Positions 3,701-54,195 of a stretch of 64,000 nt of DNA are shown here, piece by piece. Under the pieces are notes generated by a model. The model saw nothing but the letters and a program-made list of their open reading frames with translations. It was not told the DNA's origin and did not search any database. Numbering within the stretch: position 1 is the first letter of the stretch; every line of letters begins with the position of its first letter. A program made the translations under genes and the position numbers. Source of the DNA: Octopus sinensis. Its lineage: Eukaryota. Location: positions 3,534,001 to 3,598,000 of the forward strand of contig NC_043003.1 in assembly GCF_006345805.1 (NCBI RefSeq), in the 5' to 3' direction.

Positions 3701-6700
3701 GCCCTCTAGTATAGCCTTGAGCCAACAAAGACTTGTGAGTGGATTTGGTACATGGAAACTGAAAGAAGCCCATTCATCATCATCATCATCATCATCATCA
3801 TTTAACGTCCGCTTTCCATGCTAGCATGGGTTGGACGGTTCAACTGGGGTCTGGGGAGCCCGAAAGCTGCACCAGTCCAGTCAGATCTGGCAGTGTTTCT
3901 ACAGCTGGATGCCCTTCCTAACGCCAACCACTCCGAGAGTGTAGTGGGTGATTTTATGTGCCACCGACACAGGTGCCAGACGAGGCTGGCAAACGGCCAC
4001 GCTCGGATGGTGTTTTTTATGTGCCACCGACACAGGTGCCAGACGAGGCTGGCAGACGGCCACGCTCGGATGGTGTTTTTTATGTGCCACCGACACAGGT
4101 GCCAGATGAGGCTGGCAAACGGCCACGATCGGATGGTGCTTGTTACGTGCCCACAGCACGGAGGCCAGTCGATGCGGTACTGGCTACGGCCACGTTCGGA
4201 TGGTTTTATTGTGTGCCACGTGCCACCAGCACTGGTACCACAAAGATACAAATTCCATTGATGTTCATCTATTTTGATTTGTTTTGATTTGATTTTCACT
4301 TGCCTCAACAGGTCTTCACAAGTGTCACAAGAAGGAAGGTATGCACAGGTGGACTGACTACGTCCCAGGTAGGGGCCATGGGTTATGGCCTGACTAGTCT
4401 TGCCGGGTCTTCGGATGGTGTTTTTATGTGCCACCGACACAGGTGCCAGATGAGGCTGGCGAACGGCCACGACCGGCATTGTTTATATATATTTATGTGT
4501 GTGCATGTGTGTGTGTGTGTTTGTGTGTTTGTCCGCGCTTGCTGCTTGACAACTGGTGTTGGTGTGTTTACATCCCTGTAACTTAGTGGTTTGGCAAAAG
4601 AGACCGATAGAATAAGTACGAAGCTTAAAACGAAAATAAGGATTGGGTTCAATTCGTTGGACAAAAATTCCTCAAGACGTTGCTCCAGCATGGCTGCAGT
4701 CTAATGATTGAAACAAGTAAAAGGTAATGTGTGCCATTGCCACCACAAAAGGTGCCGCCATCCGATGTTGCCTTTTTATCAATCTGTTACACACACATCT
4801 CTCTAACAGCCCAAGGCTGATGCTGGTGGCTGTCATCAATGAGCTTCTGCAGCATCTTGACAATGATGACAACAACGACACCACCACCACCACCACCACC
4901 ACCACCACCACCACCACCACACCACCACCAACAACAAGTGACAATATCAATATTGCTACAACCCCCCCCACCACCACAATCTCTGCAGATTCCACCATCA
5001 CCATAGCAACTACCACAACAACAACAACAACAACATACATGACCCTCACCGCTACTACTACCACTACTACTACCATACTCTAACCAGTACAGTCACTACC
5101 GTTTCACTAAGAAGCCAACAGGGGGCAGTTATGAAGTCGCTCAATCAAATAGAATGGAAGACGTTATGAGACCTACCTCTGTTTGTGATGTTATTGCCTC
5201 CTCTCACCGACTGCCTGTTCCGTGCTGAAGGCTGAATACTGGACAATGGTCTTTGTACCCTGGTAGAGAGAGACAACACATGGTATTGTTATTGCAGTAG
5301 TTGTTAGACTCAGAGTTGGTGCCACATAAGAAGCACCCAGTACACTCTGTAAAGTGGTTGGCGTTAGGAAGAGCATCCGGCCATAGAAATCCTGCAAGAA
5401 CAGACAAGAGTGCCTGGTGTGGGTCTTGCCCTTACCAGCTCCATTTTGGCAGACCACTAAAATGGGCACCAGAACAGTAGTGAGGCCATTAAGTAGCATG
5501 CAAGACAAGGCTCAGAAGGAAGGGAGAGACGATTGAAGGCACAAGAAAGGGGTCAATGGTGGAAAGTGGTATGGGAAAGGATAATAATGAAAAGAAGAGA
5601 TGGAGTTTAACAGGAAATGGTTCTTGGGAGAGGGGGAGGTAACTGGTAGCTCAAAAGAGAAGATGAAATATGTCCTGATTTAGCTCTCAAAAAGTTATAT
5701 ACTGAAAAACTTTTTCCAAAACTGAATAACTTTTCCCACCTACCATTTTACTGTAGCCAAATTAGGGAATCGTTCACTCTTCTCTGTGAAATGATATAAA
5801 CAACTGAAGGTAATTGAACCTGAGGATTAACTAAACTGTTTTTGTATGTGTTATGAGTTATATAAGACATATAAAGTTTAACTTTGAAACATATGTAGTC
5901 TTTATTTATTTTTTCCGTTCTTTACATTCTGATTTATATTCACAGACTTAGCAATTTTCGTTGCTAAACTGTAAGTTGTATGGTAGCTTATTGAAACCTT
6001 ATTGAAATTTGCATTGACAAAGTATATAACAGAGGACAGTTATTAAACTTTCTTTATCACATACTATCTACTTTTTGTCATCTACCCAAGCTGTGTACAT
6101 GCTTGATGCTTACTAGCTTTCTGTACCAGGATCTTTTCAAATAGCACCACCCTGTAAAAATCATGCCAAAACTAACTTTGCTTGTGCTGGTGTCACGTAG
6201 AAAGCACTGAGCCCACTCTGCGGAGTGGCTGGTGTTCAGGAAGGGCATCCAGCTGTAAAGTCCCTGCCAAAACAAACACAGTAGCCTAGGGTAGTTTTCC
6301 TACGTGGTCAGCTCCTGTGAACCGTCCTACCCGTGCATGCACGGAAGATGGATGTTAGACAATGATGATGATGATGATGATGATACATAGGAACTGCTTC
6401 ACCTTCCCAATCTTTTCCAGGCTACTTTACTCAGTCTGTCCCCTTTTTTCCCCTACAACTACAAAATATCCTTTACTCCCCTCCCAACTTGTGCACCGTC
6501 TCCTCCACATCTCTCTGCTTCCCAGACTCACTACATAAACACTTCACCTGAGCTACGCTGCATCCCTCAGGAAACCTTTGCACCTTATTTTTCACAACAG
6601 ACCTGCAGACATCTTATTGACAGGCATTCAAAAAAAAAAACATCCACTGCATCACTCTCACTCTCACTGGGTGTGGGGCATGCATACTGTCCCCTAGAAC

Positions 6701-9700
6701 TCCCTGCCAGTGAAACCTAAATACCAGTTCACCAATATTCTTTTCTACTCTAGGCACAAGGCCCGAAATTTTTGGGGAAGGGGACAGTCAATTAGATCAA
6801 TCCACAGTACGCAGCTGGTACTTAATTTATCAACTTCTAAAGGATGAAAGGCAAAGTCGACCTCGGTGGAATTTGAACTCAGAATGTAAAGACAGACGAA
6901 GCCAGTTCACCAATATTGCAGTATTGCTAGTGATGATGATGACGATGACAATGATGAAGATGATGATGATGAAATAATGATGATGATGATGATGATAGAA
7001 GTTAACAATCCATAAAACGAACGAAAAGTCTACGAACCTGGTTGATGGGATTTTGCCCCAGTCAGTATAAAGGTAGAGAACATGATTAATAATTCGAGGT
7101 TGGGTGATAATCTGGTTTATGGTTGGTCGTTTGCTAGGATCTCGGTGAAGCATGCTTAGAATGAGTGATCGCAATTCTTCACTGTAAATATCAGGAATTG
7201 GTTCAAAGGTCCCTCCAACGATTTTGATGATCAAAGCTGGAAGATTCTGGGAGAGACGGTAAATAGGTAGATAGACAGATTGATGAATAGGCAAATAAAC
7301 AGATAGATAAATACAGAGGCAGATAAATAGGCAGAGAGACAAACAGACAGACAGAGAAATAGACAGAGAGACAAACAGACAGACAGAGAGACAAGTAGAT
7401 GAATAAATAGGCAGACGATTTGGCCAATAAATAATTAGATAGATACACATATAAAATAAGCAAACAGATAGTGAGGTACATAAGTGGATAGATAGAGAGA
7501 TAGTTAGGCAAATTGAAAAAAGAAAATAGAGAGAAAATAGGCGTAGGAGTGGCTGTGTGGTAAGTAGCTTGCTTACCAACCACATGGTTCCGGGTTCAGT
7601 CCCACTGCGTGGCACCTTGGGCAAGTGTCTTCTGCTATAGCCTCGGGCCGACCAATGCCTTGTGAGTGGATTTGGTAGACGGAAACTGAAAAGAAGCCTG
7701 TCGTATATATGTATATATATATAAGTGTGTGTGCGTGTATGTTTGTGTTTGTCCCCCTAGCATCGCTTGACAACCGATGCTGGTGTGTTTACGTCCCCGT
7801 CACTTAGCGGTTCGGCAAAAGAGACCGATAGAATAAGTACTGGTCTTACAAAGAATAAGTCCCGGAGTCGAGTTGCTCGACTAAAGGCGGTGCTCCAGCA
7901 TGGCCGCAGTCAAATGACTGAAACAAGTAAAAGAGTAAAGAGTAAAGAGAGAGATAAATAGACAGATAGGCAAATAGATAGATAGATAAATAGACACAGA
8001 TAGACAGTAGATCAATAGATAGACAGCTGATGAGTTTGAATAAGGTTGGATGCTGCAAAGAGGAGGGGAAGCTAACATTTCAGGCATGTTCTTCGTCTGA
8101 AAGGAGAACATTTTATCCAACAAATAAACCATTCCAGCCAAGGAATATCAGAGTAAAGCAGAAGACATTTTATGTTGTTTCTCAATTCTTCGATGCCAAA
8201 GATTGTGCCAGTCGTGTATTTTCCTCTCTTTGTTGTCTCAAACTGGAGATTAAAGTGTCCGAAACCATTGGATAATGGATTCATCATCAACAGCATCATT
8301 TAACATCCCAAAAGTTCTTTGATTGAAAGTCGATGCTTTAACAAGATGCTTGCACCTGGCAAATTTCGATTTTGATTTTAGTTCTGTAGCTGAGTTGTCG
8401 AATGCAGGTGCCACAACTGGCACACCTGGTCATGACCCTTGGTGCTCTGTGCGACGATTGATGCAGTGTGAGTTTCTGGAATGATCTATAGTCATGACCA
8501 GTCTTTTGATGGGTCAGTATAATCATCAGCGTGAACCACGTCAATTGATGGTCGCAGTATTTCTCTGACTGACCTGGTTGGCCCTGGCCCCTGATCTGTT
8601 TTGAATTTCTCTGCCCAGCATCCTGTGCACCTTACCGGTGACTAGGTTGACAGTTCTTCCACCAATGATGCTACTTGTATGACACAAACAATCATTTACA
8701 ACTATCCCTCACAAGACTCGGGCTATAGTAGAAGACATTTGCGCCCAAGGTGCCATGCAGTGGGACTGAACCTGAAACCATGTGGTTGGGAAGTGAATTT
8801 GTTTTAACAGAAATGAACAAATGGGAAAGGTTTGGATTTCACAAGGAATCAGTCTTGGAGAAGAGGAATTGTAAAGAAAAACCGTTAATAGAGAGTAGAG
8901 GTTAGTCATTGGTAGAGGTATGTGGCTTGGTGGTTAGGGCACTTGGTTCATGATTGCTAGGTGGTGAGTTCAATTCCTGGCAGCATGTTGGGTCCTTTAG
9001 CAAGACACTTCATTTCACGTTACTCCAGTCCACTCAGCTGGCAAAAATGAGTGGTACCTGTATTTCAAAGGGCCATCCTTGTTACACTCTGTGTCATGCT
9101 GAATCTCCCTGAGAACTACATTAAGGGTACACGTGTCTGTGGAGTGCTCAGCCACTTGCACGTTAATTTTACAAGCAGGCTGTTCCGTTGATTGGATCAA
9201 GAGGATCACTCATTGTAGTGGCCGATGGAGAGCCAGGCCATGAGGGTGGTCATTAGTCTTGTTCCATACACCATTTCTAGAGCCAGGAGAACAAGAACAC
9301 ACCCAGTGGACATTCAGGCAGAAAATAATGTGGGGAGGAACAGGATGTAAAGAACAATGATGGCTACTCTCGTCTGGTATTGGGTGAGGATGCAGTCTGA
9401 GACTCATCTAACTCATGATAGCATGGAAAAATGGATGTAAAATAGTGATGGTGATAAATGATAATGGCAATGATGATGCTGGTGATGGTGATGGTAATGA
9501 TGTGATGACGTGATTATGATGATAATGATGAGGATGATGATGGTGATGGTGAGTAACAATCACCATTTCCTCAAAACAATATCTGACCCAGAAATACAGG
9601 AATCCATCCCTACTCTCAACACAAAAACTTATTTAACAAATTCCATTTCAATTTGTACCTGGCACAATTCGTAAAAAGCACCATCCGTTCATGGCCGTTG

Positions 9701-12700
9701 CCAGCTTCGCCTGGCCCCCGTGCCGGTGGCACGTAAAAAGCACCATCCGTTCGTGGCCATTGCCAGCCTCGCCTGGCCCCCGTGCCGGTGGCACATAAAA
9801 AGCACCATCCTATCGTGGCCGTTTGCCAGACTCGTCTGGCACCTGTGCCAGTGGCACGTAAAAAGCACCCACTACACTCATGGAGTGGTTGGTGTTAGGA
9901 AGGGCATCCAGCCGTAGAAACACTGCCAGATCAAACTGGGCCTGGTGCAGCCTTCTGGCTTCCCAGACCCCGGTTGAACCGTCCAACCCATGCTAGTATG
10001 GAAAGCTAAACGATGATGATGATGATGATGAATCTCCTCGGCCTTTTGGCTAAGATCAAAGTGTAGTATCTGTTCTCATCAGCTTAATATCTGATACGAT
10101 CCCTATTTTGGGCCATCGATACTAAACTGATTTTTAGAACGGGGCGAAGTGTTAGGGGTTTGCTCTGCCTTTGCCACAGGTCGGCCTGGTATTGCGGTGC
10201 TTCCAGAATTTAGCCCATTTCTAACGGCGGTGCACCAGCATGGCCACAGTACTGAGCTGAAACTAGAGAAAAAAATCTATTGTTATTCTATATAAATGGT
10301 CAGGTGAGTGAATCCTAACAAGATGTTGAATAACAAACCAAAGTATCCGGTTCAATCCTCAGCCACTGCTGAAGTGCTTGTGGGGCTAATTGACTCTATT
10401 TATACCTTTTTTTAACCAATTTGTAATGTTTATTTTGTTATAAATGTAAAAGTAAACAACGTGGAAAGAAACTGGGATTAAAGGAGAGGATTAAGAGATG
10501 AATATTAAATGGTCAAGATTAAGAGGTGAAGGTTAAAAGATGAAGGTTGAAAGGTGAAAGGTCAAGAGATGACAGTCGAAAAGAGGTGAAAATCAATTGG
10601 TGCTGACAACCACGGTATTTTCTAATTGTTGAGGTTAACTAAAAATTTGTTACTTACCGATGCCTCGAAGGCTCGTTTCAGAGTAACCATTTCGTAGAGA
10701 ACACAACCAAGAGCCCAGATGTCGCTTTTTTGGTTATATCTTTGTAAATGGTTAAGGAATAACAGAATAGGAAACACGTTTCTGGGTCAGGAACTTTAGG
10801 CCCAGTAAATGCAATAACAACATGACCCCTAACCTTTTTGTAATTCTAGCAGTTATTAGTGGCTGTGTGGTAAGTAGCTTGTTTACCAACCACATGGTTC
10901 TGGGTTCAGTCCCACTGCGTGGCACCTTGGGCAAGTGTCTTCTACTATAGCCTCGGGCCGACCAAAGCCTTGTGAGTGGATTTGATAGACGGAAACTGAA
11001 AGAAGCCCGTCGTATATATGTATATATATATGTGTGTGTGTGTTTGTGTGTCTGTGTTTGTCCCCCTAGCATTGCTTGACAACCGATGCTGGTGTGTTTA
11101 TGTCTCTGTTACTTAGCGGTTCGGCAAAAAGAGACCGATAGAATAAGTACTGGGCTTACAAAGAATAAGTCCCGGGGTCGAGTTGCTCGATTAAAGGCGG
11201 TGCTCCAGCATGGCTGCAGTCAAATGACTGAAACAAGTAAAAGAGAAAGAGAAATTAGTAATTAAGGTGGCATTCTGGCAGAGTCGTTAGCATGTCAGGT
11301 TAAACGCTTAGCAGCAATTCGTTTGTCTTTATGTTCTGCGTCCAAATTCTGCCAAGGGTGACTTTGTCTTTCACCCTTTTGGGGGGGTCAATAAAATAAG
11401 TACCAATTGCATCCATGTAACTGACTTAGCCCCCTCCCCCCGAATTGCTGGCCTTGTGCAAAAATTTGAAACCATTATCAATGATGTACCTGGTCCATGC
11501 ACAGCAGTCAGTGGAACCATGGAGAAGTAGTTTGTTGATGTACCTGGTCCACAGAGCAGTCAACAGTATCATGGGGAGGTACAGTTCACAATTGTATTTA
11601 GTGTCTTGTTAAACTGCACACCACAAGGTCCAGTCTTTGTTGTGATGTGGTGGTTTGTATGCCTCAATGATCCTGAGAGCTATACAAAGGGAGCACAAGG
11701 ACCTGGTAGGTCCTCCCATATTGGACAGGTCAAAGGATAGTGGCCAGACTAATATGGACTGACCCTTCTCAGAAGTAAAAATGGGACAGCACAGAGTTAA
11801 GGACTCTACCTGGAAAAGAAAAGTTAATTACAAAAGCATTGATGACAATTGAAAGCTAAACAAGACCCAGGAGGGGAAGACCTTCCCCCAGGGAAAGACC
11901 CCACAAAAGGAAGTGGCTGAGAGGATGCCCTAAAAACAGGTGAAGGTGGGAGAGTGGAAAAAGCAAAGATCCAACAGGAGAGAAGCAGAGAAGACAATCC
12001 AGAGTTGACACCAGTTGTTGATGTCCTGCGCACCACAGGGAACGAAGGACTTAAGTGATTGAATAAGTTGTTAAATTGCAGAGCTGGGTTAAATCTTGTC
12101 AAGAGATCATCATCATCATCATCGTCGTTTAACATCCGCTTTCCATGCTAGCATGGGTTGGACGGTTCAACTGGGGTCCGGGAAGCTAGAAGGCTGCACC
12201 AGGCCAGTCAGATCTGGCAGTGTTACTACAGCTGGATGCCCTTCCTAACGCCAACCACTCCGAGAGTGTAGTGGGTGATTTTATGTGCCACCGACACAGG
12301 TGCCAGACGAGGCTGGCGAACGGCCACGCTCGGATGGTGCTTTTATGTGCCACTGACACAGGTGCCAGACGCTCGGATGGTGTTTTTTTTTTGAAATCAT
12401 CATCATCATCATTTGTTGTCCATGCTGGCATGGGTTGGATGGTTTGACCAGGGCTGGCAAGCTGGAAGGCTGCACCAGGCTCCAATCTGATCTGGCAGAG
12501 TTTCTATAGTCGGATGCCCTTCCTAATGCCAACCACTCCAAGATTGTAATGGGTGCTTTTATGTGCCACCAGTATGGGTGCCATTTACATAACACTGGTA
12601 TCTGCCAAGACCGCAACTTTACCTGGCTTAATGGGTCTTCTTCTCAAGCATGGCATAATGCCAAAGGTCTTGGTCATTGCTTCTGTGAGGCCCAATATTG

Positions 12701-15700
12701 AAAAGGAGCTTTTCACGTGCCACCAGCATCGGTTGCTTTGCCTCCATGAGGCCCAACACTTGCAATGTGCTTTTTACATACCAGTTTCATGACACCAGCA
12801 TCAGCCACGACTACGACTTCACTTGGTTTGGGAGGTCTTCTCAAGGAAAAGCAGATCGCTAGAAATCTGGGATAAACACTTATTGACTGAGACATCTGAT
12901 GGAGATTAGGGACAAACTAATCTGGTAGAAAACAGAAAGAATATTGGTTTCAAATTTTGGTAGGAGGGGCAAATCATTACATTGAACCCCAGTATATGTT
13001 AGTTAGTTAGTTAGTTAGTTAGTTAATTTGGCTCAAAAGCAAATAGCAAGGCCATGTAGGGGGACATGGAGTTAAGTACAGGGTGGTGTTCATGTAAAAA
13101 GTTCAGGCCACTTGAGGTCAAGGGAGGCTTTGAACAAAGCGGTTGTCGGCATCTTCACCATCTCGTCTGGCAGCTTGTTCCACGGATCCGCAACCCGGAC
13201 GGAGAAAGCTCCTCTCCTTCGATTGAGATGAAATCGTCGCAGGTAGAGCTTTTCGGAATGACCCCGCAGCCGACGCTCTGGAGCAGGAGTGAAGAACAGC
13301 TCTTTCGAGAGGTTACACTTTCCGCTTATGATGTTGTGGGCGAGAATGAGATCACCACGGCGGCGGCGTTTTTCAAGAGAATAAAGGTCGAGCGTCCTCA
13401 GCCTTTCTTCGTAGGACAAATTTTTGAGACCATGAACCATGCGGGTAGCCAGCTTCTGGACTCTTTCGAGATGCTGTATGTCTTTGAGGAGATAAGGAGA
13501 AGAGGCTTGAATCCCATACTCCAATATGGGTCCCACCAGCGTGACATAGAGTGGTAGGAATATGGCTGCTGTGAGCATTCCGAATGACCGTCGAATCAAG
13601 AACAGAATTCCGCGTGCTTTGTTGGCAGCATGGACGCACTGGGCCGAAGGCGAAAAGGAGGAATCCACCAAGATACCTAGGTCCTTTACCTGATCGGTCC
13701 TCTCCAGGTATGGAGGCGCAATGGCCCAGTGGTTAGGGCAGCGGACTCGCGGTCGTAGGATCGCGGTTTCGATTCCCAGACCGGGCGTTGTGAGTGTTTA
13801 TTGAGCGAAAACACCTAAAAGCTCCACGAAGCTCCGGCAGGGGGTGGTGATCCCTGCTGTACTCTTTCACTACTCTTTCTCCCACTCTTTCTAAAACAAT
13901 GTGAACGCATTGTGACCAGCGATGTGTAACTACATCTGATGGACTGGTCGGTCACGTGATCACGTGATATTACAGGTACTTATTTTTATCAAGTTTGAAA
14001 GGGTGAAAATCAAAGCTGACCTCGATGGAATTTGAACTCAGAACGTAAGGACGGATGAAATGATGCTAAGCCTTTTACCCAGCACGACAACAATTCTGGC
14101 AGCACTCTGCCTTGGAAACAAAGAATATTATACAAGCAAAACTCACCAAAATTGTGTGTTAGTGAACGTCAACGGAAGTGGAATGTTTTGTGATATTTGA
14201 AACAAAGGATACGGCATTCCAGAACAGAGTTCAGGAGACAGGTAACATGGGGTGCCAACAACCTGGAAGAGAGAAGTTTTGGTAAAAGGTGACGTGTCTC
14301 ACAATGTGTGCGTGTGCGCTTGTGAATTTGTTTTTAACATATTGGATATCAATAAACCACTGTTAATCATTCAGAGACACCATCAGCATGGAATAATAAT
14401 AGTGAAGTTTGTGTTAACATATTTAATGTAACGATTCTAGTTGGAAATAATTATGTGGTGAAGAAAAGACAATATCAGTCTACTGATTGATGTTATTTTA
14501 ATTATTTCAGCAAATATAGAAAGAGATGTAGACATGTTTTAATAAGGCATAGGTGTCGCACTAGTTGCTAATGTAATAATGAGAGCTTCACTAACGAGAG
14601 AGGAACAATGTTATATGAGAGGAAGTGTGAAAAATTGGAACGCTTAGAATAAATAGATTTATACTTTAGCAAGAACAGTGAAAGATGCACTTCACTTATG
14701 AGGTTTAATACAGCTGAAACATGTCTCAGTTGTTTCCCTTCCTTACCAAACTACCATAAGCCATTTAGATAATGATGTTGTCTTTTCTCGAACACATCAT
14801 CATCATCATTTTAATGTCCACTTTTCCATGCTTGTATAGGTCAGAGGGAGATTCATTCTATGACCACATGCCCTTCTGCTTCCTGTTGCCAACCCTCACC
14901 TCTTTCAGAGTAAGGTCATATTTCCCCGTGGCTAGGAATATTTTCACGGACGATTGGAAACGAAGGCCACAGCCTGTATGACAGGGACGCTCATTTACAA
15001 CAATTACATGAGGCCAAGACAAGGAGATATTAACACACACACACACACACACAGAGGCACAGGCGTGGCTGTGTGGTAAGAAGTTTGCTTCCCAGCCACA
15101 GGGTTCTGAGTTCAGTCTCACCCCATGGCATCTTGGGCAAGTGTCTTCTACAACAGCCTCAGCTTGACCAAAGCGTTGTGAGTGGATTTGGTAGATGGAA
15201 ACTGAAAGAAGCCCGTCGTATATGTATATGTGTGTGTGTGAGTGCCCTTGTGTCTGTAATTGTTTCTCACCACAGCTTGACAACCGGTGTTGGTTTTTTT
15301 ACATCCCTGCAACTTAGCAGCTCATCAAAAGAGACCAATTAAATAAGTGGCAGGCTTAAAAACAATAAAGAGCACTGGGATTGATTCGTTTGACTAAAAT
15401 TCCCCAGGGCACTGCCCCAGCATGGCCACAGTCAAATGACGGAAACAAGCAAAAGATAAAAAGATATAATTGAATGAAACCTCTCTCACTCTCTCTGTCT
15501 ATTTTCACCCCCACCTTTGCTATTCCTCCCTTCCCCCACACCCAAGCAAAGCAAAAAACATTCATATAAGAACAAGCAAAAAAACAAAAATGTCACATAG
15601 GCACAGGAGTGGCTGTGTGGTAAGTAGCTTGCTAACCAACCACATGGTTCCAGGTTCAGTCCCATCTTGGACAAGTGTCTTCAGCTATAGCCTCGGGCCG

Positions 15701-18700
15701 ACCAATGCCTTGTGAGTGGATTTGGTAGACGGAAACTGAAAGAAGCCTGTCGTATATATATATATATATATGCGTGTGTGTATTTGTGTTTGTCCCCCTA
15801 GCATTGCTTGACAACCGTTGCTGGTGTCTTTACGTCCCTGTTACTTAGCGGTTCGGCAAAAGAGACTGATAGAATAAGTACTGGGCTTACAAAGAATAAG
15901 TACCGGGGTTGATTTGCTCGACTAAAGGCGGTGCTCCAGCATGGCCGCAGTCAAATGACTGAAACAAGTAAAAGAGTAAAAGAGAGAATATACCAGAACA
16001 AAGAAGCGGTCAGTTTTTAATCATTTTGATTTTAATTCTTATTTTGAAGAGTTTTTTTAAACAAACATAAATACTAATAATAATAATAAATTACATAATA
16101 AAGAATTATCTAAAATACTAACTGCCTCCTTTATCCTCAGGATATACATATATATATATATATAGTTCATGTGTATGTATCCGACCACCGAATACTGAAG
16201 GCCCAGTATTCGGCTACCCCACTCCGTCTATTCTGAAAGACTCCAAAATCAAGTGGCAAGACGCGTGTGGAAAGTTACAAGGGAGATAACTCACGAATGT
16301 TTGTAACTGAAATTTCCAACTTGTGTAAGAAACTCTCACGAGTTTCTGAACAGCAGAAGGTCTTCAGAGAAGAAGCCCTGCTCGGGCAGGTGTTTGCCCC
16401 TTAATTTCTTACATTCTAAGGGGTCCAGGCCACGACTCTTGGGGGGTGCACTTCTGTTGATTCCTTTTTAGCCACTTGGGATATTGGAGACCAGTGCATT
16501 TAAACTGTTTGGAGGTTTCATCCAGTCGGAACTGCTCCCTGTTGACTCCGTTTCCAAAGAAACAACGTTGGTTGTCATGGTAGCAGTGAAACGTCAACGC
16601 TATGACAACGACTCCTTCAGTACCGAAATATAAAAACATTGCCTTCAAAAGGCATCAAGGTTGTTTTGATTCTGCCTCAACTAGACCCAGCTGGAGCAAT
16701 TCTCTGCTCTCTCTGATATTTCCTTTAGGGCTTTAATCTTGTTGTTCTTTCAAGAGAGTTGTTTCGTAACATCACAAGCAGATTTCCCACAAAACCTTTC
16801 ACTCCAACCTCTTTGGCACAAACCTTCGCTTAGAAGCTGGCATGACCATCACAACTTCCTATTTCTTGTCTTAACCTTTGTGATTCTTCATTTAATAGTT
16901 AATAATACTTTTCTGGAGGTAATGTTGTAGTAGTAGTAGTAGTAGTAAAAGCAGTAGAAGTAGTTGTTCTAGAGCCTTCAGGTCAGCCCTCATGGAGCAG
17001 ATATGATAAAAGATAATCCGACCTTGACCATCCCATCTTTTATTCAGGCATAATGTTTGAAGCATCACAATATCAAAGGAGGTTGTCTTTCAGCTTAGAC
17101 AGTAGAGTTTGATTTGAGGGAGATTTGGCTGCTATTTTCAACAGGTCAGGTTATATTGTTAAGGTGAGTCTTTCAATTCTAAATGATAAATCGAATTTGA
17201 CCAATATCTGATTCCATTTATTACAATTTGGTCTTTTATGATGTAAATTCCACAAGAATATTCTGAAGACAGGAACAATCTTTTTTGAATTTTCAAAGCA
17301 GAAAGTTTGGACAATTAAGCTTTCAAAGACAATAAAAATCTAATAAAACCAATATTCTTTCTTGCATTGCTTCTCTTTAATAAACCTCACTACCTCAGCG
17401 TTCATTATATTTAACACAACCTGTTCACTACAGTTAATAAAGTGTTGTTCACTAGATTTAATACAATACTGTTCAATGTATTTAACACAATATTGTTCAC
17501 TAGATTTAATACATTACTAAACTGTTTAGTATAGTTAATACCACACTGTTCATGGTATTTAATAGAACAGTGTTCACTATGGAGTAAAGATTGTTTGCCA
17601 ACATAACATGGCAGTCCTGGTTTAGGACGAATGTTGCTGTAATTTAGCCCCAGGAGACATCGTATCCAGCTGGCTATACGACACAATCTGTCATATTTTC
17701 GAACAAGGAAATCTAGGACACAAATCGTGTCGTATAGCCATCTGGAGACGATGTCTCCTGGGGCTAAATTACAGCAACATTCGTCCTAAACCAGGACTGC
17801 CATGTTATGTTGGCAAACAATCTTTACTCCATAGAACTGTTGCTGAATATCTCTTGTTGTGAGATTTACAAATAGTAATTTTCTAGTGCTCACTATTTCT
17901 AACACAACACTGTTTGCTAAATTTTATTCCACATTACCACATTTACGAGTTTTGCTACAACTCTGAGAAAAAATTTTCATCTATAATTTTTCAAATTTCC
18001 TCATTTTAAACTCCTCTCCGATTCTATCTCACCTCTAATCTTCATTCAGCCATAAATCCGCCACCACACATACAAACGGTCCTTTATTGTCATTTTCGTT
18101 CTCTCGTCCCCAATGCTTTCATTCCGTTTCCTTCCATGCGACTAGTCTTACCGTATAAGCTTTACTTTTGCTGCTAAGAACTTTGGAAATGCCAAAGTCT
18201 CCGATTTTGACAATCTGCTTCTTTTTGTCTAGGAGTATGTTCTGTGTCTTGAGGTCTCGGTGAAGAATTTGTTTGGAGTCAACATGTTGAAGAGACAACA
18301 GCATCTGAGCAAAGTAATGCAGGATGACCTGTGGGAATGAAAAATAAAAGAGAAATAGATCTACAGACATTTTGCCATCATGATTTCACGCTTGTCTTCC
18401 AGGGGTTCGATGGATTGAGAGGGGCCGGCAACCCAGAGGCTTTGACATGGTTTCTACAGTTGGGTGTCCTTCCTAATGCCAACCACCTTCCAGAGTGGAC
18501 TGGGTGCCTTTATCTGGCACCAGTGAGTTTACCACGTAACTTACAAGACAAGACTCCACCCAGTTGGAGAAGGGGTGGGGGGTGGGACAGTCTTGAGGGT
18601 GGTGGCTTTGTGTTGGGGGTGATGAGAGGTTAGAAAGTGATGGAGGGACGGGGACAGGTGGCTTGCTGTAGGGGTCATACATGGTTATCCGAGTTGGAAA

Positions 18701-20287: not shown

Positions 20288-23200
20288 GGAGAGTGTGTGT
20301 GTTCTGTCAGACAATGAATCAAGCAATCATTGACGTCGTTGATAATGAAGACTGGCAGATTCCTGTGCAGGTGGCAAGCAAAGAAACACCGTTTTGACCT
20401 GCTGTGCTTGAGGAGATCCATTGAGTCAAGGACACCAACATCAAAGATCAATGGAAACTGCAGTTGTGGAACCTGTGCCGGTGGCACGTAAAAAGCACCA
20501 TCCGAACGTGGCCGATGCCAGCGCCGCCTGGCACCTGTGCTGGTGGCACGTAAAAAGCACCATCCAAACATGGTCGATGCCAGCGCCACCTAGACTGGCT
20601 TCCGTGCCGGTGGCACGTAAAAAGCACCATCCGAACGTGGCCGATGCCAGCGCTGCCTTGACTGGCTTCCATACCAGTGGCACATAAAAAGCGCCGTTCC
20701 GATCGTGGCCGTTGCCAGCCTCGCTTGGCACCTGTGCTGGTGGCACGTAAAAAGCACCCACTACACTCACAGAGTGGTTGGCATTAGAAAGGGCATCCAG
20801 CTGTAGAAACACTGCCAGATCAGACTGGAGCCTGGTGCAGCCTTCTGGCTTCCCAGATCCCGGTCAAACCATCCAACCTGTGCTAGCATGGAGAACGGAC
20901 GTTAAACGATGATGATGATGATGTTTGAGCTGATTCGAGATGTTTATGTAGTTGCAAGTAGATGTGGGCACCTTCTCAGCCCTTCGATATTGCTGACCCA
21001 GTGGGACATCAAAGTGCTGATAGTCTGAGAGACAGAGGGGTGCTCCAGTAGCTGGGCAAACTGAAGTAATGGAAATGAAGTACCTTGCTCAAGGACACAA
21101 TGGAATGCCTGGTCAAGGAACGGAACTCATGTCCATGTGATAACAAACCCAACACTCAACAACAAGGCCATATGCCTTCACACACTGTTCTATTAGATAG
21201 GCAGAGATACCATCAGATTCATGCAGTCCATGTTAATATGAGAAGACAAACACTTTTATAAATTACAAGGAAAAGTTAAAAGCAGAAATACTGACCTCTT
21301 CATCCAAAAGTTGTCCATTACGGCTCTGTAATAATTCAAACAATGTCCCACCTTTAAAAGAACAAAGAAACAAATCAGTAAAACAGTCTCTTTCTTTATT
21401 CTCCCATACTATTTTATACATTCACCTTTCAATGTCAGCATGTGATGTATATTTTATAAGAGTACTAGCAGTATTGCCCGGCGTTGCTCGGGTTTGTAAG
21501 GGAAATAACTATATAAGCATTTTTAGAGAGTTATAGCCAAAAAATAGCAAAAAAATGCATTAAAAATGGAAAACAAATGATGGTAAATTTTTTTTTAAAT
21601 CGTTGACTCATTGTAGACATTTTTAGAGAGTTACTTCCCTTATATAATAGCAAAAAAAATGCATTAAAATGGAAAAAAATGATGGTAAATTATTTTTAAA
21701 ACCGTAGACTCATCATAGATGCGCGCTAATACCCAGAAGGGCTCGATATGAATCACGACTATAAGATACCCAGTTTTGGTTAAACTGCACCGCAAAATGT
21801 GGGAGTAGTTAGGAATCTAAATCGTAGGAGACAGACACACAACCTCTCTTTTATATATAAAGATTATAAGAGTACATTTTATAAGAGTATTTGTTCTTAC
21901 AGCTGGATATCTTTTGTGACAATGGGCCTTAAGGATAACCCTTAACTCCTCTATAATCTTCTACATGCTAACTAGATATTTCATATCAGCCATAACTAGA
22001 TCAACATATACATATATCTCCTCATATACAATGGTCTCATACCAAATGCTGTCCTATGCACACACGTAGGTAGACATGGACACTGGCTATGTAACATGTA
22101 CACACACACACAAACAAATGCAAATGAAACATGCATAGACACATACGAAATTTACTCACATGAGCAGTGATCATGTGACACACAGATACACATATTCTAA
22201 AAACTTATGTGGGTAAAGAAGACCGTCACTAGTTTGCAACTGGTGGCAAACCTTGATCAGACAAGAATCCGTCAATGACAATGGTCTGTCATTGACAACA
22301 GTACATCACTGAAGACAGTGGTTCATCAATGACGAGGGGCTGCTACTGAAGTGATGAATGGCAGTAAAAAGAATCTGACAAAGAGATTAAGTGATGAAAT
22401 ATTTCATCATCGTTTAACGTCCACTTTCCATGCTAGCATGGGCTGGACGATCATGGGTTGGACAAAGCATGGGTTGGACGATCAGATAATCAATTAGTTA
22501 ACTGTTAAATTACTTAATGAGATGATTAACAACAGAACCAGTGTGTGTGTCTTCGTTGGTTAATGACCTACCCAAACATATTTTTAATAAAGAAATGTAA
22601 AATGGTTTTCTTTTATTCTTTTATTAGTTTCAATCAATGATTTGCGACCATGCTGGAGCCATTCTTTCAAGGGTTTAAGTTGATCATAAGTGGCCAATTT
22701 GCAGAGACCTTAGAACATTGGATAGAATACCTTGTGGTAATTGCTTTGTCAATCTCTGTACTCTGAGTTCAATTCCCAGAGAGGCCAACTTAACCATACA
22801 TTGTTCGATATTGTCTCCAGTCCTAGGACTCATAGGGGCCAGTTACCCAGTTTCTAGGCCCCGTAAATGACTGAGATCACAATACTCTTCCCAAACAGGA
22901 TGCCAGGCTGTTGCAGGGTCACTCCTTTACAGCTGAGTGAACTGAGGCAACGTGAAATGAAGTGCTTTGCTCAAGAACACAATGCATCACCTGGTCCAGG
23001 AATTGAAACCATGATTTTCTCACCACGAGAGCAACACCCTAACCACTGGGCCATGCACATTTACTGTCTTTTTAGGGTTGATAAAACAAAAAAAGTACAA
23101 ATCCAGGTTTGGTGAATTGGTGCAAGTCTTTGAGTGTCAGGTACTATCAGGCTGTTTGTGTTCTGACAGTAATGTCTGTGACTCCACCGGTCCATGTCTT

Positions 23201-38394: not shown

Positions 38395-38810
38395 ATGCGC
38401 AGGAGTGGCTGTGTGGTAAGTAGCTTGCTGACCAACCACATGGTTCCGGGTTCAGTCCCACTGCGTGGCATCTTGGGCAAGTGTCTTCTGCTATAGCCCC
38501 GGGCCGACCAATGCCTTGTGAGTGGATTTGGTAGATGGAAACTGAAAGAAGCCTGTCGTATATATGTATATATATATGTGTGTGTGTATATGTTTGTGTG
38601 TCTGTGTTTGTCCCCCTAGCATTGCTTGACAACTGATGCTGGTGTGTTTACGTCCCCGTCACTTAGCGGTTCGGCAAAAGAGACCGATGGAATAAGTACT
38701 GGGCTTACAAAGAATAAGTCCCGGGGTCGATTTGCTCGACTAAAGGCAGTGCTCCAGCATGGCCGCAGTCAAATGACTGAAACAAGTAAAAGAGTAAAAG
38801 AGTAAAGAGA
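38395..38810 (+). mobile_element. SINE family A
   Basis: Full-length copy just upstream of the GCNT gene. Confidence 0.9.
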
Positions 38811-40745: not shown

Positions 40746-40748
40746 TAT

Positions 40749-41162
40749 TACTCTTTTACTCTTTTACTTGTTTCAGTCATTTGACTGCGGCCATGCTGGA
40801 GGACCGCCTTTAGTCAAGCAAATCGACCCCAGGACTTATTCTTTGTAAGCCTAGTACTTATTCTATCGCTCTCTTTTTGCTGAACTGCTAAGTGACGGGG
40901 ACGTAAACACACCAGCATCGGTTGTCAAGCAATGCTAGGGGGACAGACACAGACACACAAACATATACACACACACTTATATATATATACATATATACGA
41001 CAGGCTTCTTTCAGTTTCCGTCTACCAAATCCACTCACAAGGTATTGGTCAACCTGAGGCTATAGTAGAAGACACTTGCCCAAGATGCCACGCAGTGGGA
41101 CTGAACCCGGAACCATGTGGTTGGTTAGCAAGCTACTTACCACACAGCCACTTCTGTGCCTA
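40749..41162 (-). mobile_element. SINE family A
   Basis: Reverse-complement full-length copy. Confidence 0.9.
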
Positions 41163-43870: not shown

Positions 43871-44704
43871 CATAAAAGTATGTTATGACTTACGTTTATA
43901 TATTTGTTTTGCAAGATTTTTGATGTGAAATCATGTGTTGAAGCAGATTTGCTGTATTTCGGAATGGTCATTTTGCCAGTTTAGCCAATAAAAACACATG
44001 CACTATATATTTGGTGTTAATTTGCTTCAGTGTTATTCATTTTTTACATTAATCTTAATCTTATATCGGCCAGAGTTCTTTCGTCACACTCCTGTGACCG
44101 CATCAGTGGTCCTTTGCTTTCTTCTTTCTTATTTGTGTGTCTCTCCTTGCCAGCGGTCAGCCATGTTGTATTTTGTATTTCAGTTGTATGTGTCTTCATT
44201 TGCGCATGCGTATACCTCTCTGTGTGTCTATGTTTATTTAGTGTGTGTGCGTAGGGGGAGGGGGCAAGTATCTGTAATATTTGTATCTCCTGTTTATATA
44301 CTCTCTTTTTTACTCTTTTACTCTTTTACTTGTTTCAGTCATTTGACTGCGGCCATGCTGGAGCACCGCCTTTAATCGAGCAACTCGACCTCGGGACTTA
44401 TTCTTTGTAAGCCCAGTACTTATTCTATCGGTCTCTTTTGCCGAACCGCTAAGTGACGGGGACATAAACACACCAGCATCGGTTGTCAAGCGATGTTGGG
44501 GGGACAAACACAGATATACAAACTCTCTCTCACACACACACACATATATATATATATATACATATATACAACGGGCTTCTTTCAGTTTCCATCTACCAAA
44601 TCCACTCACAAGGCTTTGGTCGGCCCGAGGCTATAGTAGAAGACACTTGCCCAGAAATACTAAACTTCTAAATCTCTCGTAGAGACATGTACGGTGGTGG
44701 GGCG

Positions 44705-45142
44705 ATAGAATGGTTGTATACTGTCAATCTAACACGAACGTGACAGTAGGGGGTACACCACTGCTGTTTAGCCCTAGGAAGCCTCGACGCCTCCTGATGG
44801 CTTTGACACATTTTTCCTGTGTCCTTATATACATTTACGAAGGGGAGACAAACACCCCCAGCCGCCCGGGGCTGCATCTAGGGACACGTGTTTCAGGATG
44901 ATTGTCCTTCGTCGGTGACTGCTACTCTAGGCCGACGAAGGACAAACATCCTGAAACACGTGTCCCTAGATGCAGCCCCGGGCGGCTGGGCATGTTTGTC
45001 TCCCCTTCGTAAATGTATATAAGGACACAGGAAAAATGTGTCAAAGCCATCAGGAGGCGTCGAGGCTTCCTAGGGCTAAACAGCGGTGGTGTACCCCCTA
45101 CTGTCACGTTCGTGTTAGATTGACAGTATACAACCATTCTAT
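44705..45142. repeat. Long inverted repeat: 211 bp arms, 16 bp spacer
   Basis: 44705-44915 vs 44932-45142, about 4 substitutions; possible TA target duplication. Confidence 0.95.
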
Positions 45143-47510
45143 ATATATATATATATATTTGTAAAAAATGAAGTTCGAAAATGCTGCTATATTATACAAT
45201 TTTTAATTTTTATATATACATTATAACATGTTTCAGTTCCTGAAATGAACCTTATCAAAAAGAGTTATATATAAAAAAAGACAGCTCATGCCGTCAAACA
45301 CAAGAAATTCATTTATAATACACAACGAAGTCAGACATCTTTAAAGTTCAAATATAGTTTGAAGTAAGTTCATTCATGCTATATGTTCAAAGTGTTCGAT
45401 GCAGTGGCCCACGGTGGCGATACTTATTCAATACAAAAAACAGATCAAAGTGGTGGAAAGTAGTCAATACAGAAGATTGATGTTCCCGAAAGAGCGAGGA
45501 ATTCATTTTTACCTTGAGCAATTGTGATGACCCATGGTGGATGTTCGCTGGGTGATTCTAGTGAGTCTTGTGAGTTGTTCGGGTTTTATAATGCCTGTTA
45601 GGTGGTCAGTCCAGCGTAGCGTGACGTCATCAACGTTTTGACCAATCGTTTCGTTAGGTGGCTTTAGTCAAGCAGAACGGTACGTCATCAACATTCTGAC
45701 CAATCGTGACCTATCGCTGTATTATGACTGTCTCTTGTCTGTATCCTGTTTTGACCAGTCGTTTCGTTAGGTGGCTTAGTCAAGCAGGACGGTACGTCAT
45801 CATGATTCTGACCAATCACGACTTATAGCTGTATTAGATCTGCCCCTTTTCGTTAGGTGGCTTAGTCAAGCAGAACGGGACGTCATCAGCATTCTGACCA
45901 ATCGTGACCTATCGCTGTATTATAACTGCCTCTTGTCTGTATCCTGTTTTCACCAGTCGTTTCGTTAGGTGGCTTAGTCAAGCAGAACGGGACGTCATCA
46001 AGATTCTGCCCAATCACGACTTACAGCTGCATTAGATCTGCCCCCTGTCTGTATTTTGTTAGGTGACTAGTCAAGCAGAAAGGTACGTCATCAATATTCT
46101 GACTAATCTCTGCACCCTGTTTGTATCCTGTCCATTCTAGCAGAACTAGACGTCATCAGCGTGTTGACCAATCAGAATCAGGTCTGACCCTTAGCTGTAT
46201 CGTATGTGGTCAGTCCATCAGGGTCAGATTTGCACGAAAGAATTTTTTTCCTTTTTTACTAAGGCATATTTCCGTCAGTGCGAGTGACTGTTTAAGGTAG
46301 CGGCCGTGGTGGAATTTTGCTTCTCCTTTTCGGAGGACTTATCTTTTGTTTTAATATTCCTGGCCCAGGGTGTTTAAACTTGGTCTAAATTTTTTTATGA
46401 AATACAGTTCTTTATTTTGGCGTTGTGTGAAGGTTGCGTTGTCACTGAATGTATAGAGCGGGTTAGTTGTAAATTTCAGATTTACATTTCCAGCACATCT
46501 ATCTATGTGTCCGCTGACCGGTATTTTGCGGTAATCAGGGTTTCTAATTTGTGATTTATGCACCGCCATCCTGTTACGTAAGCTATTTTTTGTATGGCCT
46601 ATATACTGCCTATTGCAGCCTGCGCATGTTATGACGTAAATTAAGTTTTCTGATGCGCAGGTGAAGTTTGTTCTAATGGTGAACTGGTGGCCTTGTTCCA
46701 GTATAAATTCTGATCCTTCTTTCAAGATGACACAGATTCCGCAGTTGGGCCTTCCACATTTTCTAACTGCTGGTTTTGTGGTTGATGTTGAGTGCAGTGT
46801 AGCTTGGGTTAAAATCCTTTTCAAGGATTTTGGTTGCCGTTTACTTTTAATGATGGTGTGTGTTTCGAGGATCCGGTTCATCTTTGGGTCTCCCTTTAGT
46901 AGGGCTGTGCTTTGTAGTATGGTGTTGAAGGCCTCATTGTTGAGTCGGTTGTGTGTAGAGATGTAGGGAAGGGTTTTTAATTGTTCTTTCTTTTTTGGTT
47001 TTGTTTGTCTCAGGTTTTCTATACTTAATTTAAGTATCCGTTGGATTGCACTGTCTATTAGGGGCTGTGGATAGTTTCTATTTGTGAGTGTGGTTCTAAG
47101 TTCCTGGAGACGTGTGTGTCGGGTGTTTGTGTCTGATATTATGGTGCAAATCCTTCTAGCTAAACAAAAAGGGACATTCATTCTAGTGTGTCGTGGGTGG
47201 CATGAATCAAAGGGTAGGTACTGTTTAGAGTCTGTCGGTTTATAGTAGATATCTGTCTCTATTTTGTTGCCGGTTTTCTTAATGAGGATGTCTAAAAATG
47301 GTAATTCTTTTTCGTTGTGGTCCATCGTGAATTGTATATTGTCATTTATTCCATTTAATAGTATTTTAAATTCCTCAAGTTTCTCTATACCTTTGTCCCA
47401 GATGATGAAACAGTCATCGAGGTATCTTTTCCAGTTGTTATGGATATAGGTGGCGAAGGTGTTTCCATATTTCTCGAGTGTTATCCGGTATAGTATTTTC
47501 TCGGTATAGT
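45143..47510 (-). mobile_element. Penelope-like retroelement, 5'-truncated, young
   Basis: Open frame 47510-46351 with RT (RYLDDCF, TDIYYKPTDSKQYL) and GIY-YIG nuclease (CGRPNCGIC, LIYVITC..C..QYIGHT..LRNRM..H); 1.2 kb 3' region; both ends in (TA)n. Confidence 0.92.
45535..46200 (-). promoter_or_regulatory. Promoter-like array in the Penelope 3' region: 7 CRE-like/CCAAT modules, TATA, Inr-like, Kozak ATG
   Basis: ACGTCA at 45624, 45682, 45794, 45880, 45992, 46085, 46150; CCAAT starts 18 nt later in six of seven. Minus strand: TATAAAA 45590-45584, TCACT near 45562, CCACCATGG with ATG at 45535. Confidence 0.6.
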
Positions 47511-47889
47511 ATATATATATATATATACACACATACACACATACATAGATATATAAATATGTATATATATACATACATACATACATACATACATACATAC
47601 ATACGTACATACATACATACATATATATATGTGTGTGTGTGTGTGTGTGTATGGTAGTGAAACATGGGCTGTGACTACTGAGGACATGCGTTTTAGCAGT
47701 ATTTGCATGCTTCACTTGTCATTACAACAATGCTGTTGTGACACAGTTCTTTTGATTGAACGAGATGTAAATGTCACCTGCTATTTGATATAAAGTGTGT
47801 ACATGCGTACAGGAAGGCAGTCACCAACATACCTACCTACTTAGCTACACCCTTACATGCAGTGCTGCCTTTATCCTTTGTTTCATTAT

Positions 47890-47907
47890 ATCTATCTATC
47901 TACCTAC

Positions 47908-47987
<80 letters not shown>

Positions 47988-47988
47988 A

Positions 47989-48031
<43 letters not shown>

Positions 48032-48092
48032 ATATATATATATATATATATATATGTCTGTCTATCTATCTATCTCTGTCTCTCTCTCTCTG

Positions 48093-48123
<31 letters not shown>

Positions 48124-48128
48124 GTCTG

Positions 48129-48221
<93 letters not shown>

Positions 48222-48222
48222 A
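47890..48222. repeat. (TATC)n microsatellite with TA/TC interruptions
   Basis: Read directly; resumes at 49195-49385. Confidence 0.97.
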
Positions 48223-49194
48223 CGACGAGCTCGGGGCGAACCTGGACGTCGACAAGGAATACCTGACTCGCCTGTTCGGGACAACTTTTGGGCCAGGGCC
48301 CATGGACAACTTCCAGAGATCCCTGGCCTGGCAGTGCTACCGAGAAGCGCTACCCATTCGGGATAAGCTCTACAGACACTGCTCAAGAAACACGGGCCCG
48401 ATCTGCCCGAGATGCGGTCAGAGCGACGAAACCGTTCTGCACGCACTCGTGCAGTGTCCAACAATTTCCGACCTGTGGGCTTATGTCGAACAACTGCTGT
48501 CACGTGTGGGACGAGTCGGTTTATCAGCTGAGTCTATCGTCAATATTGTCACGCCTCCTTCCTTCAAACGGGAAGGAAGAGCTATTTTCATCATCCTTGT
48601 GGCTATGGTGAAAGAATGTATCTGGTGGACGCGTCTGAAAGGATTGGAGACAAACACTTTCCTCTCTGGTCAACCTCTCATCAACTTCTTCAAGTACCAC
48701 TTGAAGAGGAAAGTGAGAGTAGAGAGGCAAGTTTTGTCTAGCGAACATTTTAAAAAAAGATGGATGAATGTAGCAAAGATGGCATGTATGAATGACGAAG
48801 CCACCTTGAGCATGATCCTATGAACCCAGAAATTGAAAACAGAGGGTTACCCACTTGCAAACAAATGTGGTAACATATAACAATATTGACCAAGGTTACC
48901 GTGGTCTTTTTCGTAGGCTTTTCTTCCCACGGATAAACCTTACTTGCTTTCCCCTTTACACCATACATCATGACACTGTGATACACGATCCCTATTGATC
49001 CTTTTTTCATTTTTCTTTTCTTTTGTTCCTTTCCCTTTTTCTTTTTTTCTTTTCCTTTTTTTTCCCCCCCTTTACGATCCCTTTTGATCGAAAACCTACG
49101 CCACCTTTTTTTTTTTTTTCATCCCCCAAAAGAAAAGCTCTACCTTGTAACTTGTCCCATCTGTGTGCAGCCCTGTGTGGCCAATAAAGAAACT
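48223..49194 (+). mobile_element. L1/Tx1-clade LINE 3' end embedded in (TATC)n
   Basis: Open frame to 48823 with zinc-finger-like REALPIRDKL..CPRC..DETVLHALVQC; AATAAA at 49183; (TATC)n on both sides. Confidence 0.8.
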
Positions 49195-54000: not shown

Positions 54001-54195
54001 TTGCATGCAGTAAAATCTCTCAGGAAAGAAATTTTATTTCTATTTTGATGCAACAGGCCCCCAATATTTAGTAAAAGTATTGGGGTGACGGCTGTGCAGG
54101 CGTTAGGGGAGGCCATCCCATGTCTGTTGACTGTGGTGGTGGTCGTCTTGCATAGTGGTGGGCAGGGTTCCTTCTTTGTGCTTGGTGTAGGCCAG
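51085..54195 (-). mobile_element. CR1/L2-group LINE, ORF2 (APE + RT) broken by frameshifts, 3' end intact
   Basis: APE motifs (LVETHL, RTDR..GVAVY, MGDFNFP, PTR.NNILD, SDH); RT motifs (YRPISLTS, QHGFRPGRSC, YLDFTKAFD, QGTVLGPLLF, YAND); tail GCATGGCTGCAGCTCTGAGCTGAAACTAGAAAAAA. Confidence 0.92.

Follow-up and report, generated by a model that had tools for sequence, protein, structure and literature searches.

Mammalian L1 and a few fungi provide well-documented chimeras in which a small nuclear RNA (snRNA) is joined to part of a long interspersed element (LINE). In mammals, such retrocopies are described for U6 and, more rarely, for U1, U2, U3 and U5 (PMC4476161). Tripartite chimeric pseudogenes are known from Magnaporthe (Gogvadze 2007, PMC2104539). 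In crocodilians, the SINEU elements form a multi-copy family of short interspersed elements (SINEs) that owe their mobility to Tx1 and have a Mariner element as their target (PMC4494074); they demonstrate that snRNA chimeras can found families. Here we describe a U2-derived sequence fused to a LINE-derived 3′ tail at positions 10032–10275 of a 64,000-nt stretch of the Octopus sinensis genome (RefSeq assembly GCF_006345805.1, contig NC_043003.1, positions 3,534,001 to 3,598,000 of the forward strand; hereafter the window). We regard it as probable, though well short of certain, that this locus is a chimeric retrocopy that arose by template switching, was dead on arrival and possibly consists of three parts. 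It would place in a mollusc the same process that is known from mammals and fungi, and the LINE involved would be one whose recognition signal is a structured 3′ tail.

The octopus locus shares with the mammalian snRNA–L1 chimeras a full-length snRNA joined at its own 3′ end to the 3′ part of a 5′-truncated LINE in sense orientation. As we read it, it also shares their target-primed insertion and their dead-on-arrival product. It differs in its host, a cephalopod, and in its LINE, which is not L1 and carries a "stringent" hairpin 3′ tail rather than poly(A). Moreover, the LINE contributes only a recognition module of about 50 nt, and the duplication of the target surrounds a larger block. Mammalian snRNA–L1 chimeras have reportedly also been treated by Buzdin (2002/2003) and by Garcia-Perez (2007).

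The likeness to SINEU (PMC4494074) lies in the U2-derived head, the short retroposon format, the proposed template-switch origin, the absence of an RNA polymerase III (pol III) promoter and the 5′ flanking extensions that some SINEU copies carry. A head derived from U1 or U2 is what characterises SINEU, and the octopus chimera has one; its evidence consists of one locus and an ortholog. SINEU-1, however, has no LINE that shares its tail, whereas a LINE with the same tail exists in the octopus. The octopus chimera thus resembles the founder event proposed for SINEU (PMC4494074). With the Magnaporthe chimeras it may share a double template jump and the presence of three RNA-derived parts in one insertion, although in the octopus the three-part nature is suggested only by a (GAT)n tail that abuts U2 nucleotide 1.

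A last comparison concerns the tail. LINE/SINE pairs that have a 3′ stem-loop tail in common, such as UnaL2/UnaSINE1 of eel and MIR/L2, have reportedly been described by Okada and colleagues. The octopus LINE likewise has a hairpin module in common with a tRNA-headed, CORE-type SINE and with the U2 chimera. In contrast to those pairs, the head of the chimera is an snRNA of the RNA polymerase II (pol II) class, so no autonomous transcription is expected. The chimera is the minimal product, a small RNA plus a tail of about 50 nt, that the classical model of SINE birth requires, and a successful tRNA-headed SINE with the same tail lies close to it.

Anatomy of the U2–LINE chimera

The Rfam U2 model (RF00004, gathering score 46) matches window positions 10030–10223 on the forward strand with 128.2 bits (E = 1e−25), over model positions 1–192 of 192. 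Rfam finds no further U2 in the window, even at E ≤ 1. Aligned with U2 of O. vulgaris, Argonauta and human, the U2-derived segment occupies 10032–10222 (+) and is essentially full length. Its 5′ end reads ATCTCCTCGG, against the canonical ATCGCTTCTCGG, and carries a 2-nt deletion and one substitution. Its 3′ end lies about 8 nt beyond stem-loop IV. This is the expected 3′ end of U2 as judged from the Rfam alignment, which reaches model position 192, and from a U2 copy of Argonauta that ends within about 2 nt of it, rather than from a mature octopus U2. Besides the damaged 5′ end, the copy carries about six derived substitutions at positions where Argonauta and human U2 agree. Including changes that postdate speciation, its total divergence is about 4–5%.

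The U2 part ends at 10222 and a LINE module begins at 10223, in the same orientation and with no spacer. The module (10223–10275, +) comprises AACGGCGGTGCACCAGCATGGCCACAGTACTGAGCTGAAACTAGAG at 10223–10268 followed by seven A residues at 10269–10275. Within it, hairpin 1 (10226–10245) and hairpin 2 (10247–10259) precede AAACTAGAG and the A-run. Over 46 nt, the tail differs from the reverse complement of 51095–51141 at 8 positions, most of which are CpG-type transitions of the 51-kb copy; it also matches the 3′ ends of two related LINEs (L001 and L002, below). The window contains exactly two copies of a 30-nt core of the tail, where 100 shuffles lead one to expect none. An earlier first-pass annotation, made from the letters of the window, had read the locus as U2 followed by the 3′ tail of this LINE, and the Rfam score, the tail match and the spacerless joint in one orientation all bear this out.

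A full-length U2 to which the LINE part is joined without an intervening base and in the same orientation argues for template switching. Indeed, of the origins considered, a single switch of the reverse transcriptase (RT) onto U2, already put forward in the first-pass annotation, is the best supported. We infer the switch itself, and the number of jumps, along the following lines. The RT of a CR1/L2-like LINE would start target-primed reverse transcription at the 3′ end of the LINE RNA and would copy only the two-hairpin 3′ recognition module of about 50 nt. It would then switch template to the 3′ end of U2 snRNA and copy this RNA to its 5′ end. A second jump may have followed, to a SINE RNA at its (GAU)n 3′ end, and would have yielded a SINE–U2–LINE-tail insertion.

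The two RNAs might instead have been fused before reverse transcription. Ligation by RtcB is a documented route for U6/L1 (PMC6789731; discussed in PMC11838501). If U2 had been ligated or trans-spliced to the 3′ fragment of a LINE and the product later retrotransposed via the tail, the anatomy would be identical to that of a template switch, and a LINE part that starts at the base of a structured module could be a fragment protected from cleavage. The two routes are inseparable by sequence alone. RtcB, however, needs a 2′,3′-cyclic phosphate end, which is characteristic of U6, and U2 is not known to carry such an end. A fusion at the RNA level seems to us distinctly improbable.

Whichever way the parts were joined, the product would hardly have been transcribed from within. 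U2 genes are transcribed by pol II from external promoters, and U2 contains no internal pol III promoter. The U2 part of the chimera also contains runs of four T residues (10106–10109) and five T residues (10131–10135), at which pol III would be expected to terminate. Thus, the U2 head offers the reverse of the classical pol III SINE, which has an internal promoter and no internal terminator, and the retrocopy is expected to be transcriptionally dead.

The tail, its partner LINE and a SINE that uses it

The counterpart of the tail lies in a degenerate LINE at 51090–54296 (−). Its open reading frames (ORFs; 51156–54296, −) encode an apurinic/apyrimidinic (AP) endonuclease (Exo_endo_phos/Exo_endo_phos_2) and an RT (RVT_1), and are broken by frameshifts. 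The segment that matches the tail, 51095–51141, represents the last ∼46 nt of a 3′ untranslated region of ∼60 nt, and the element terminates in A-rich sequence plus (TA)n. Relatives of this LINE were found on a scaffold in ENA (L001, 68% amino-acid identity) and in Argonauta hians (L002, 59%). Both share its 3′-terminal motif, GGCGGTGCACCAGCATGGCCACAGC..(loop)..GCTGAAAC.AGA, after which comes A-rich sequence or (TA)n. Membership of the LINE in the CR1/L2 group is plausible from its features, as distinct from an RT phylogeny: it combines endonuclease and RT domains with a C-terminal domain, a hairpin tail and a CORE-type SINE partner. The C-terminal domain is one that we take to be of the CR1/L2 kind.

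Every version of the tail folds as two adjacent hairpins followed by AAAC.AG. Both hairpins show compensatory changes across the LINE and SINE versions: in hairpin 1 G-C is replaced by A-U and C-G by U-A, and hairpin 2 occurs as CAGCC/GGCTG, CAGCCG/CGGCTG, CAGTC/GACTG and CAGC/GCTG. The tail of the chimera has a folding energy of −15 kcal/mol (z = −2.5).

The same module closes a tRNA-headed SINE of ∼400 nt that is present in at least 10 copies in the window. Copies lie at 921–1315, 7537–7945, 10858–11254, 15608–15985 and 38404–38801 on the forward strand and at 40747–41152 and 44314–44653 on the reverse strand, and in each the last ∼50 nt are a variant of the LINE tail. The head of this SINE has tRNA-like A and B boxes, its body resembles a CORE domain, and its 3′ end is the module variant AAAGGCGGTGCTCCAGCATGGCCGCAGTCAAATGACTGAAACAAGTAAAAGAG, with compensatory changes in the stems. 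SINEs with this tail show duplications of roughly 7–13 nt. The window thus holds a tail-sharing pair, the 51-kb LINE and the tRNA-headed SINE. Because related LINEs and an abundant tRNA-headed SINE share the hairpin module, the tail is, to judge by its sequence, the element recognised by a "stringent" LINE/SINE system.

The tail of the chimera is of the LINE type, not of the SINE type. Its form ancestral to O. sinensis and O. vulgaris, CAGCACTGAGCTG...GAAACTAGAG, fits the LINE consensus of the window copy, L001 and L002, whereas SINE-type tails read CAGTCAAATGACTG...GAAACAAGTA. In the chimera, the LINE-derived sequence sets in no more than ∼3 nt from the base of hairpin 1, which is close to where the tRNA-headed SINE becomes homologous to the LINE.

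Species comparison at the Nek8 locus

The chimera lies antisense in an intron of Nek8, upstream of the kinase-domain exon at 7038–7246 (−). Orthologous loci were fetched via Nek8 proteins for O. bimaculoides (L005), O. vulgaris (L006/L007) and Argonauta hians (L008). In O. vulgaris, SINE, U2 and tail are arranged in the same way at the orthologous site (246 nt, 97.6% identity, Rfam score 135.5 bits), and the sequence is collinear with 8474–10303 at 97%. In O. bimaculoides, window positions 7948–8473 align to L005 18695–18170 and positions 10304–10860 to L005 18175–17611. The whole of 8474–10303 is missing there, and the flanks abut at a single GTGAGT (L005 18170–18175). This hexamer is duplicated in O. 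sinensis, at 8468–8473 and 10304–10309 (+). Thus, O. bimaculoides presents an empty site for the block as a whole.

This comparison relocates the target-site duplication. The first-pass annotation had pointed to AATCT as a candidate, and the pentamer does occur at 10031–10035 and 10274–10278. However, the left copy takes its first letter, an A, from the end of a (GAT)n run and continues with the ATC of U2's own 5′ end, and the empty site in O. bimaculoides puts the inserted unit at 8474–10303, flanked by GTGAGT. The AATCT pair is therefore unsupported as a duplication; it is also shorter than the duplications of roughly 7–13 nt that accompany SINEs with this tail. A k-mer scan found no positioned repeat of ≥6 nt around U2 plus tail, and none around the tail alone, an arrangement that the annotation had named as a mark of chance adjacency. 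TGAATC (10029 and 10309) and other shared 6-mers were rejected as duplications, since they occur at chance frequency.

The sequence of the U2 part behaves like that of its surroundings. Between O. sinensis and O. vulgaris it differs at 5 of 192 positions, conserved loop positions included, and the flanks are 97.5% identical, which is the same rate. The copy is therefore unconstrained and drifts neutrally. Introns of O. sinensis and O. bimaculoides are 86–88% identical, equivalent to ∼6.5% per lineage; the 4–5% divergence of the U2 copy lies below this, as would be expected had the copy been inserted once the O. bimaculoides lineage had separated. The chimera would then have entered the genome of the last ancestor shared by O. 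sinensis and O. vulgaris and, as an antisense passenger of the Nek8 intron, would have drifted since. The borders, as far as their sequence can tell, also support insertion rather than deletion in O. bimaculoides: the right border lies 28 A/T-rich nucleotides past the A-run, and the tail is oriented as a target-primed insertion would have it.

The same data bear on whether the two parts belong together at all. A severely 5′-truncated LINE might later have hit a U2 gene or a tailless U2 pseudogene, or the locus might be a real variant U2 gene within the intron. The high Rfam score would suit such a gene, and Argonauta does have a U2 copy of like orientation in this Nek8 intron. Against this stand the zero spacing between U2 and the LINE module, the lack of duplications around the tail alone, the absence of the chimera from O. 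bimaculoides, the neutral drift and the damaged 5′ end. Nor does the Argonauta copy fit, given that it lacks stem-loop I, has different flanks and, at 86% identity, is too similar for an orthologous stretch of neutral intron. We consider a chance neighbourhood or a real gene highly improbable. The U2 part is a non-functional copy rather than a functional U2 gene: a SINE stands where the proximal promoter would be and a LINE tail where the 3′ box would be, the 5′ end is damaged, the sequence drifts at the rate of its flanks and O. bimaculoides does not have it.

The inserted block

The lineage-specific block of 1.83 kb (8474–10303, +), present in O. sinensis and O. vulgaris but not in O. bimaculoides, contains several transposon pieces in addition to the chimera. 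It opens with a unique stretch (8474–8713), followed by an inverted 70-nt fragment of the tRNA-headed SINE (8721–8793), another tRNA-like SINE (8923–9233) and an old (GAT/GGT)n-tailed remnant (∼9380–9547). Nothing with recognisable coding capacity was found in 8474–9670. A (GAT)n-tailed SINE-like element with internal 63-nt repeats then occupies 9670–10031 (+), and probably reaches 5′ to about 9555–9595. U2 and the LINE tail come next, and a 28-nt A/T-rich stretch, TCTATTGTTATTCTATATAAATGGTCAG, fills 10276–10303 (+) between the A-run and the right GTGAGT. This stretch, also missing in O. bimaculoides, could have been a terminal microsatellite that has since decayed, or else it is what is left of the 3′ part of an earlier insertion.

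Between the (GAT)6GA tail of the SINE-like element and U2 nucleotide 1 there is no spacer. Given ∼20 SINE ends of this kind in 64 kb, a random insertion would fall within 2 nt of one in only ∼0.1% of cases. This low expectation points to a second template jump, from the U2 5′ end to the 3′ end of the SINE RNA, or to targeted insertion. A third GTGAGT, at 9549–9554, lies exactly at the end of the old microsatellite, and 9555–10303 (SINE–U2–tail) could accordingly be a single GTGAGT-flanked unit. This inner boundary is weak and possibly due to chance, because GGTGA belongs to the microsatellite unit. A nested, sequential insertion of the parts of the block is also plausible, given the other lineage-specific insertions nearby. 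A second composite indel, 11431–12642, which served as a control for unit insertions, shows no clear duplication.

Within ∼6.5 kb of the Nek8 intron, five insertions are missing in O. bimaculoides (7548–7945, 8474–10303, 10858–11254, 11431–12642 and 12997–13967), which speaks for very high retroelement activity in the lineage of O. sinensis and O. vulgaris. The last of them, 970 nt long, includes a LINE C-terminal fragment at 13090–13671 (−) that looks CR1/L2-like by eye.

Several observations count against a template-switch insertion as we have outlined it. First, U2 plus tail has no clean duplication of its own; the 6-nt duplication encloses a larger composite block, and the inserted unit may be this block or a part of it. 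The 5′ part of the block includes aged transposon fragments, one of them in opposite orientation, and the 28 nt between the A-run and the right GTGAGT are atypical for the ends of this LINE. Second, the polarity of the indel comes from one species without an alignable outgroup: Argonauta introns are unalignable for the 1.83-kb indel apart from exons and repeats, and a microhomology deletion of 1.83 kb in O. bimaculoides is conceivable. Third, selection for a minimal tail in an amplifying lineage would equally lead to a 5′ boundary within ∼3 nt of that of the tRNA-headed SINE, as is seen here. Fourth, the view that the junction is single-copy comes from ∼250 kb of octopod DNA. Finally, the genome of the giant squid is reported to contain ∼1,300 U2-like loci, which its authors consider likely SINEs (PMC6962438).

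Recurrent U2 fusions and the question of a family

In Argonauta hians, the U2 copy that lies antisense in the same Nek8 intron (L008 26981–26799, 133.6 bits) lacks stem-loop I. Its 3′ end and that of the octopus copy differ by no more than ∼2 nt of U2 sequence, and 13 nt separate it from an internally truncated (GAT)n SINE, whose consensus runs further 5′ in other copies. The whole U2–SINE chimera spans L008 26585–26981 (−). The Argonauta and Octopus copies share not only intron and orientation but also a similar distance from the exon when young insertions are left out (∼740 versus ∼830 nt). We judge this shared position, for which we have no explanation, to be a coincidence or the result of a high density of U2 retrocopies. 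Orthology of the two copies was ruled out: their partners differ, the Argonauta copy is truncated, O. bimaculoides has neither block nor chimera at the site, and 86% identity is too high where neutral intron sequence is saturated. If RTs repeatedly switch template onto an abundant nuclear RNA, independent U2 fusions with different 3′ partners are to be expected, and two such fusions are seen. They suggest that U2 is a repeated partner, joined to the retroelement RNA that happens to be copied. Taken with the excess of U2-like loci in the giant squid, the octopus chimera and the Argonauta U2–SINE chimera suggest that U2 is a preferred jump target of cephalopod LINE RTs. For genome annotation, high-scoring Rfam U2 matches in cephalopods should be read with caution, since they are often retrocopies.

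Alternatively, the locus could be a member of a cephalopod U2-headed, SINEU-like family, whose founder chimera was copied repeatedly by a CR1/L2-type LINE via the minimal two-hairpin tail. If so, crocodilians would no longer be the sole known hosts of snRNA-headed SINEs, and the ∼1,300 U2-like loci reported from the giant squid would have an explanation. Several features lend themselves to such a family. The chimera has the complete tail module that the abundant tRNA-headed SINE uses, with nearly the same 5′ boundary, and two independent U2-derived copies occur in only ∼250 kb of octopod DNA. In addition, the 5′ extension of the block resembles SINEU-2 copies that were transcribed from their flanks (Kojima, PMC4494074). 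Transcription of the founder, on the same tentative footing, would probably have come by read-through from flanking promoters.

Other evidence speaks against amplification. About 250 kb of octopod DNA contained no second U2/tail junction; this covers the window and loci of O. vulgaris (69 kb), O. bimaculoides (40 kb) and Argonauta (79 kb; L002 and L005–L008 overall). The plus-frame ORF across the junction (54 aa) has no candidate relative among 5.8 billion proteins. The minus-frame ORF (57 aa) gave 70 matches in a phmmer search of 1.84 billion representatives, all of them ORFs over U2 genes and none with the tail; octopus repeats are poorly covered in these protein collections. The exact tail-core pattern had one chance match in JGI metagenomes, on a GC-rich bacterial contig, and none in IMG/VR, both collections being without cephalopod DNA. 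These negatives are not strong, since cephalopod assemblies lay outside the DNA search. We also found no description of a cephalopod U2-headed SINE in the literature.

The biology of the parts points the same way. The Argonauta U2 copy has another 3′ partner, and the U2 head has no internal promoter and carries pol III terminators. By the argument of Kojima (PMC4494074), the existence of a LINE with the same tail favours independent chimeras over a family. All told, a U2-headed family with this locus as a member strikes us as unlikely, if the least unlikely of the alternatives, and a one-off or low-copy product of template switching would account better for the locus.

Other features of the window

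The (GAT)n-tailed SINE-like element occurs in >20 copies in the window, for example at 3780–4219 (−), 20487–20923 (+) and 62965–63667 (−). Copies vary in the count of internal 63-nt tandem repeats and have a longer, variable 5′ region. They often stand directly behind the (GAT)n tail of another copy, as at 12103–12583, which suggests tail-targeted insertion or concatemers formed by template jumps.

Two inverted repeats stand out. The first, 61570–61829/62227–62486, is built of SINE sequence, with arms of 260 nt that are 100% complementary and a spacer of 397 nt; an inverted duplication of very recent date would explain it, as would an error of assembly. The second, at 44705–45142, has arms of 211 nt (98% complementary) around a 16-nt spacer and gives sub-threshold mir-584 matches on both strands. 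It is probably a hairpin element akin to miniature inverted-repeat transposable elements.

An ORF with a GIY-YIG domain (46351–47715, −), from a Penelope-like element, adjoins one with a zf-RVT domain (47795–48823, +), and a long microsatellite array with an 8-nt period lies at ∼47.8–48.3 kb. Next to Nek8 there is an intact single-exon gene for a core-2/I-branching enzyme (Branch, PF02485; 36529–37887, −), which recurs verbatim in the O. sinensis assembly GCA_006345805.1 on CM016865.1 at ∼3.56 Mb; the synteny of this gene with Nek8 is kept in O. vulgaris and O. bimaculoides.

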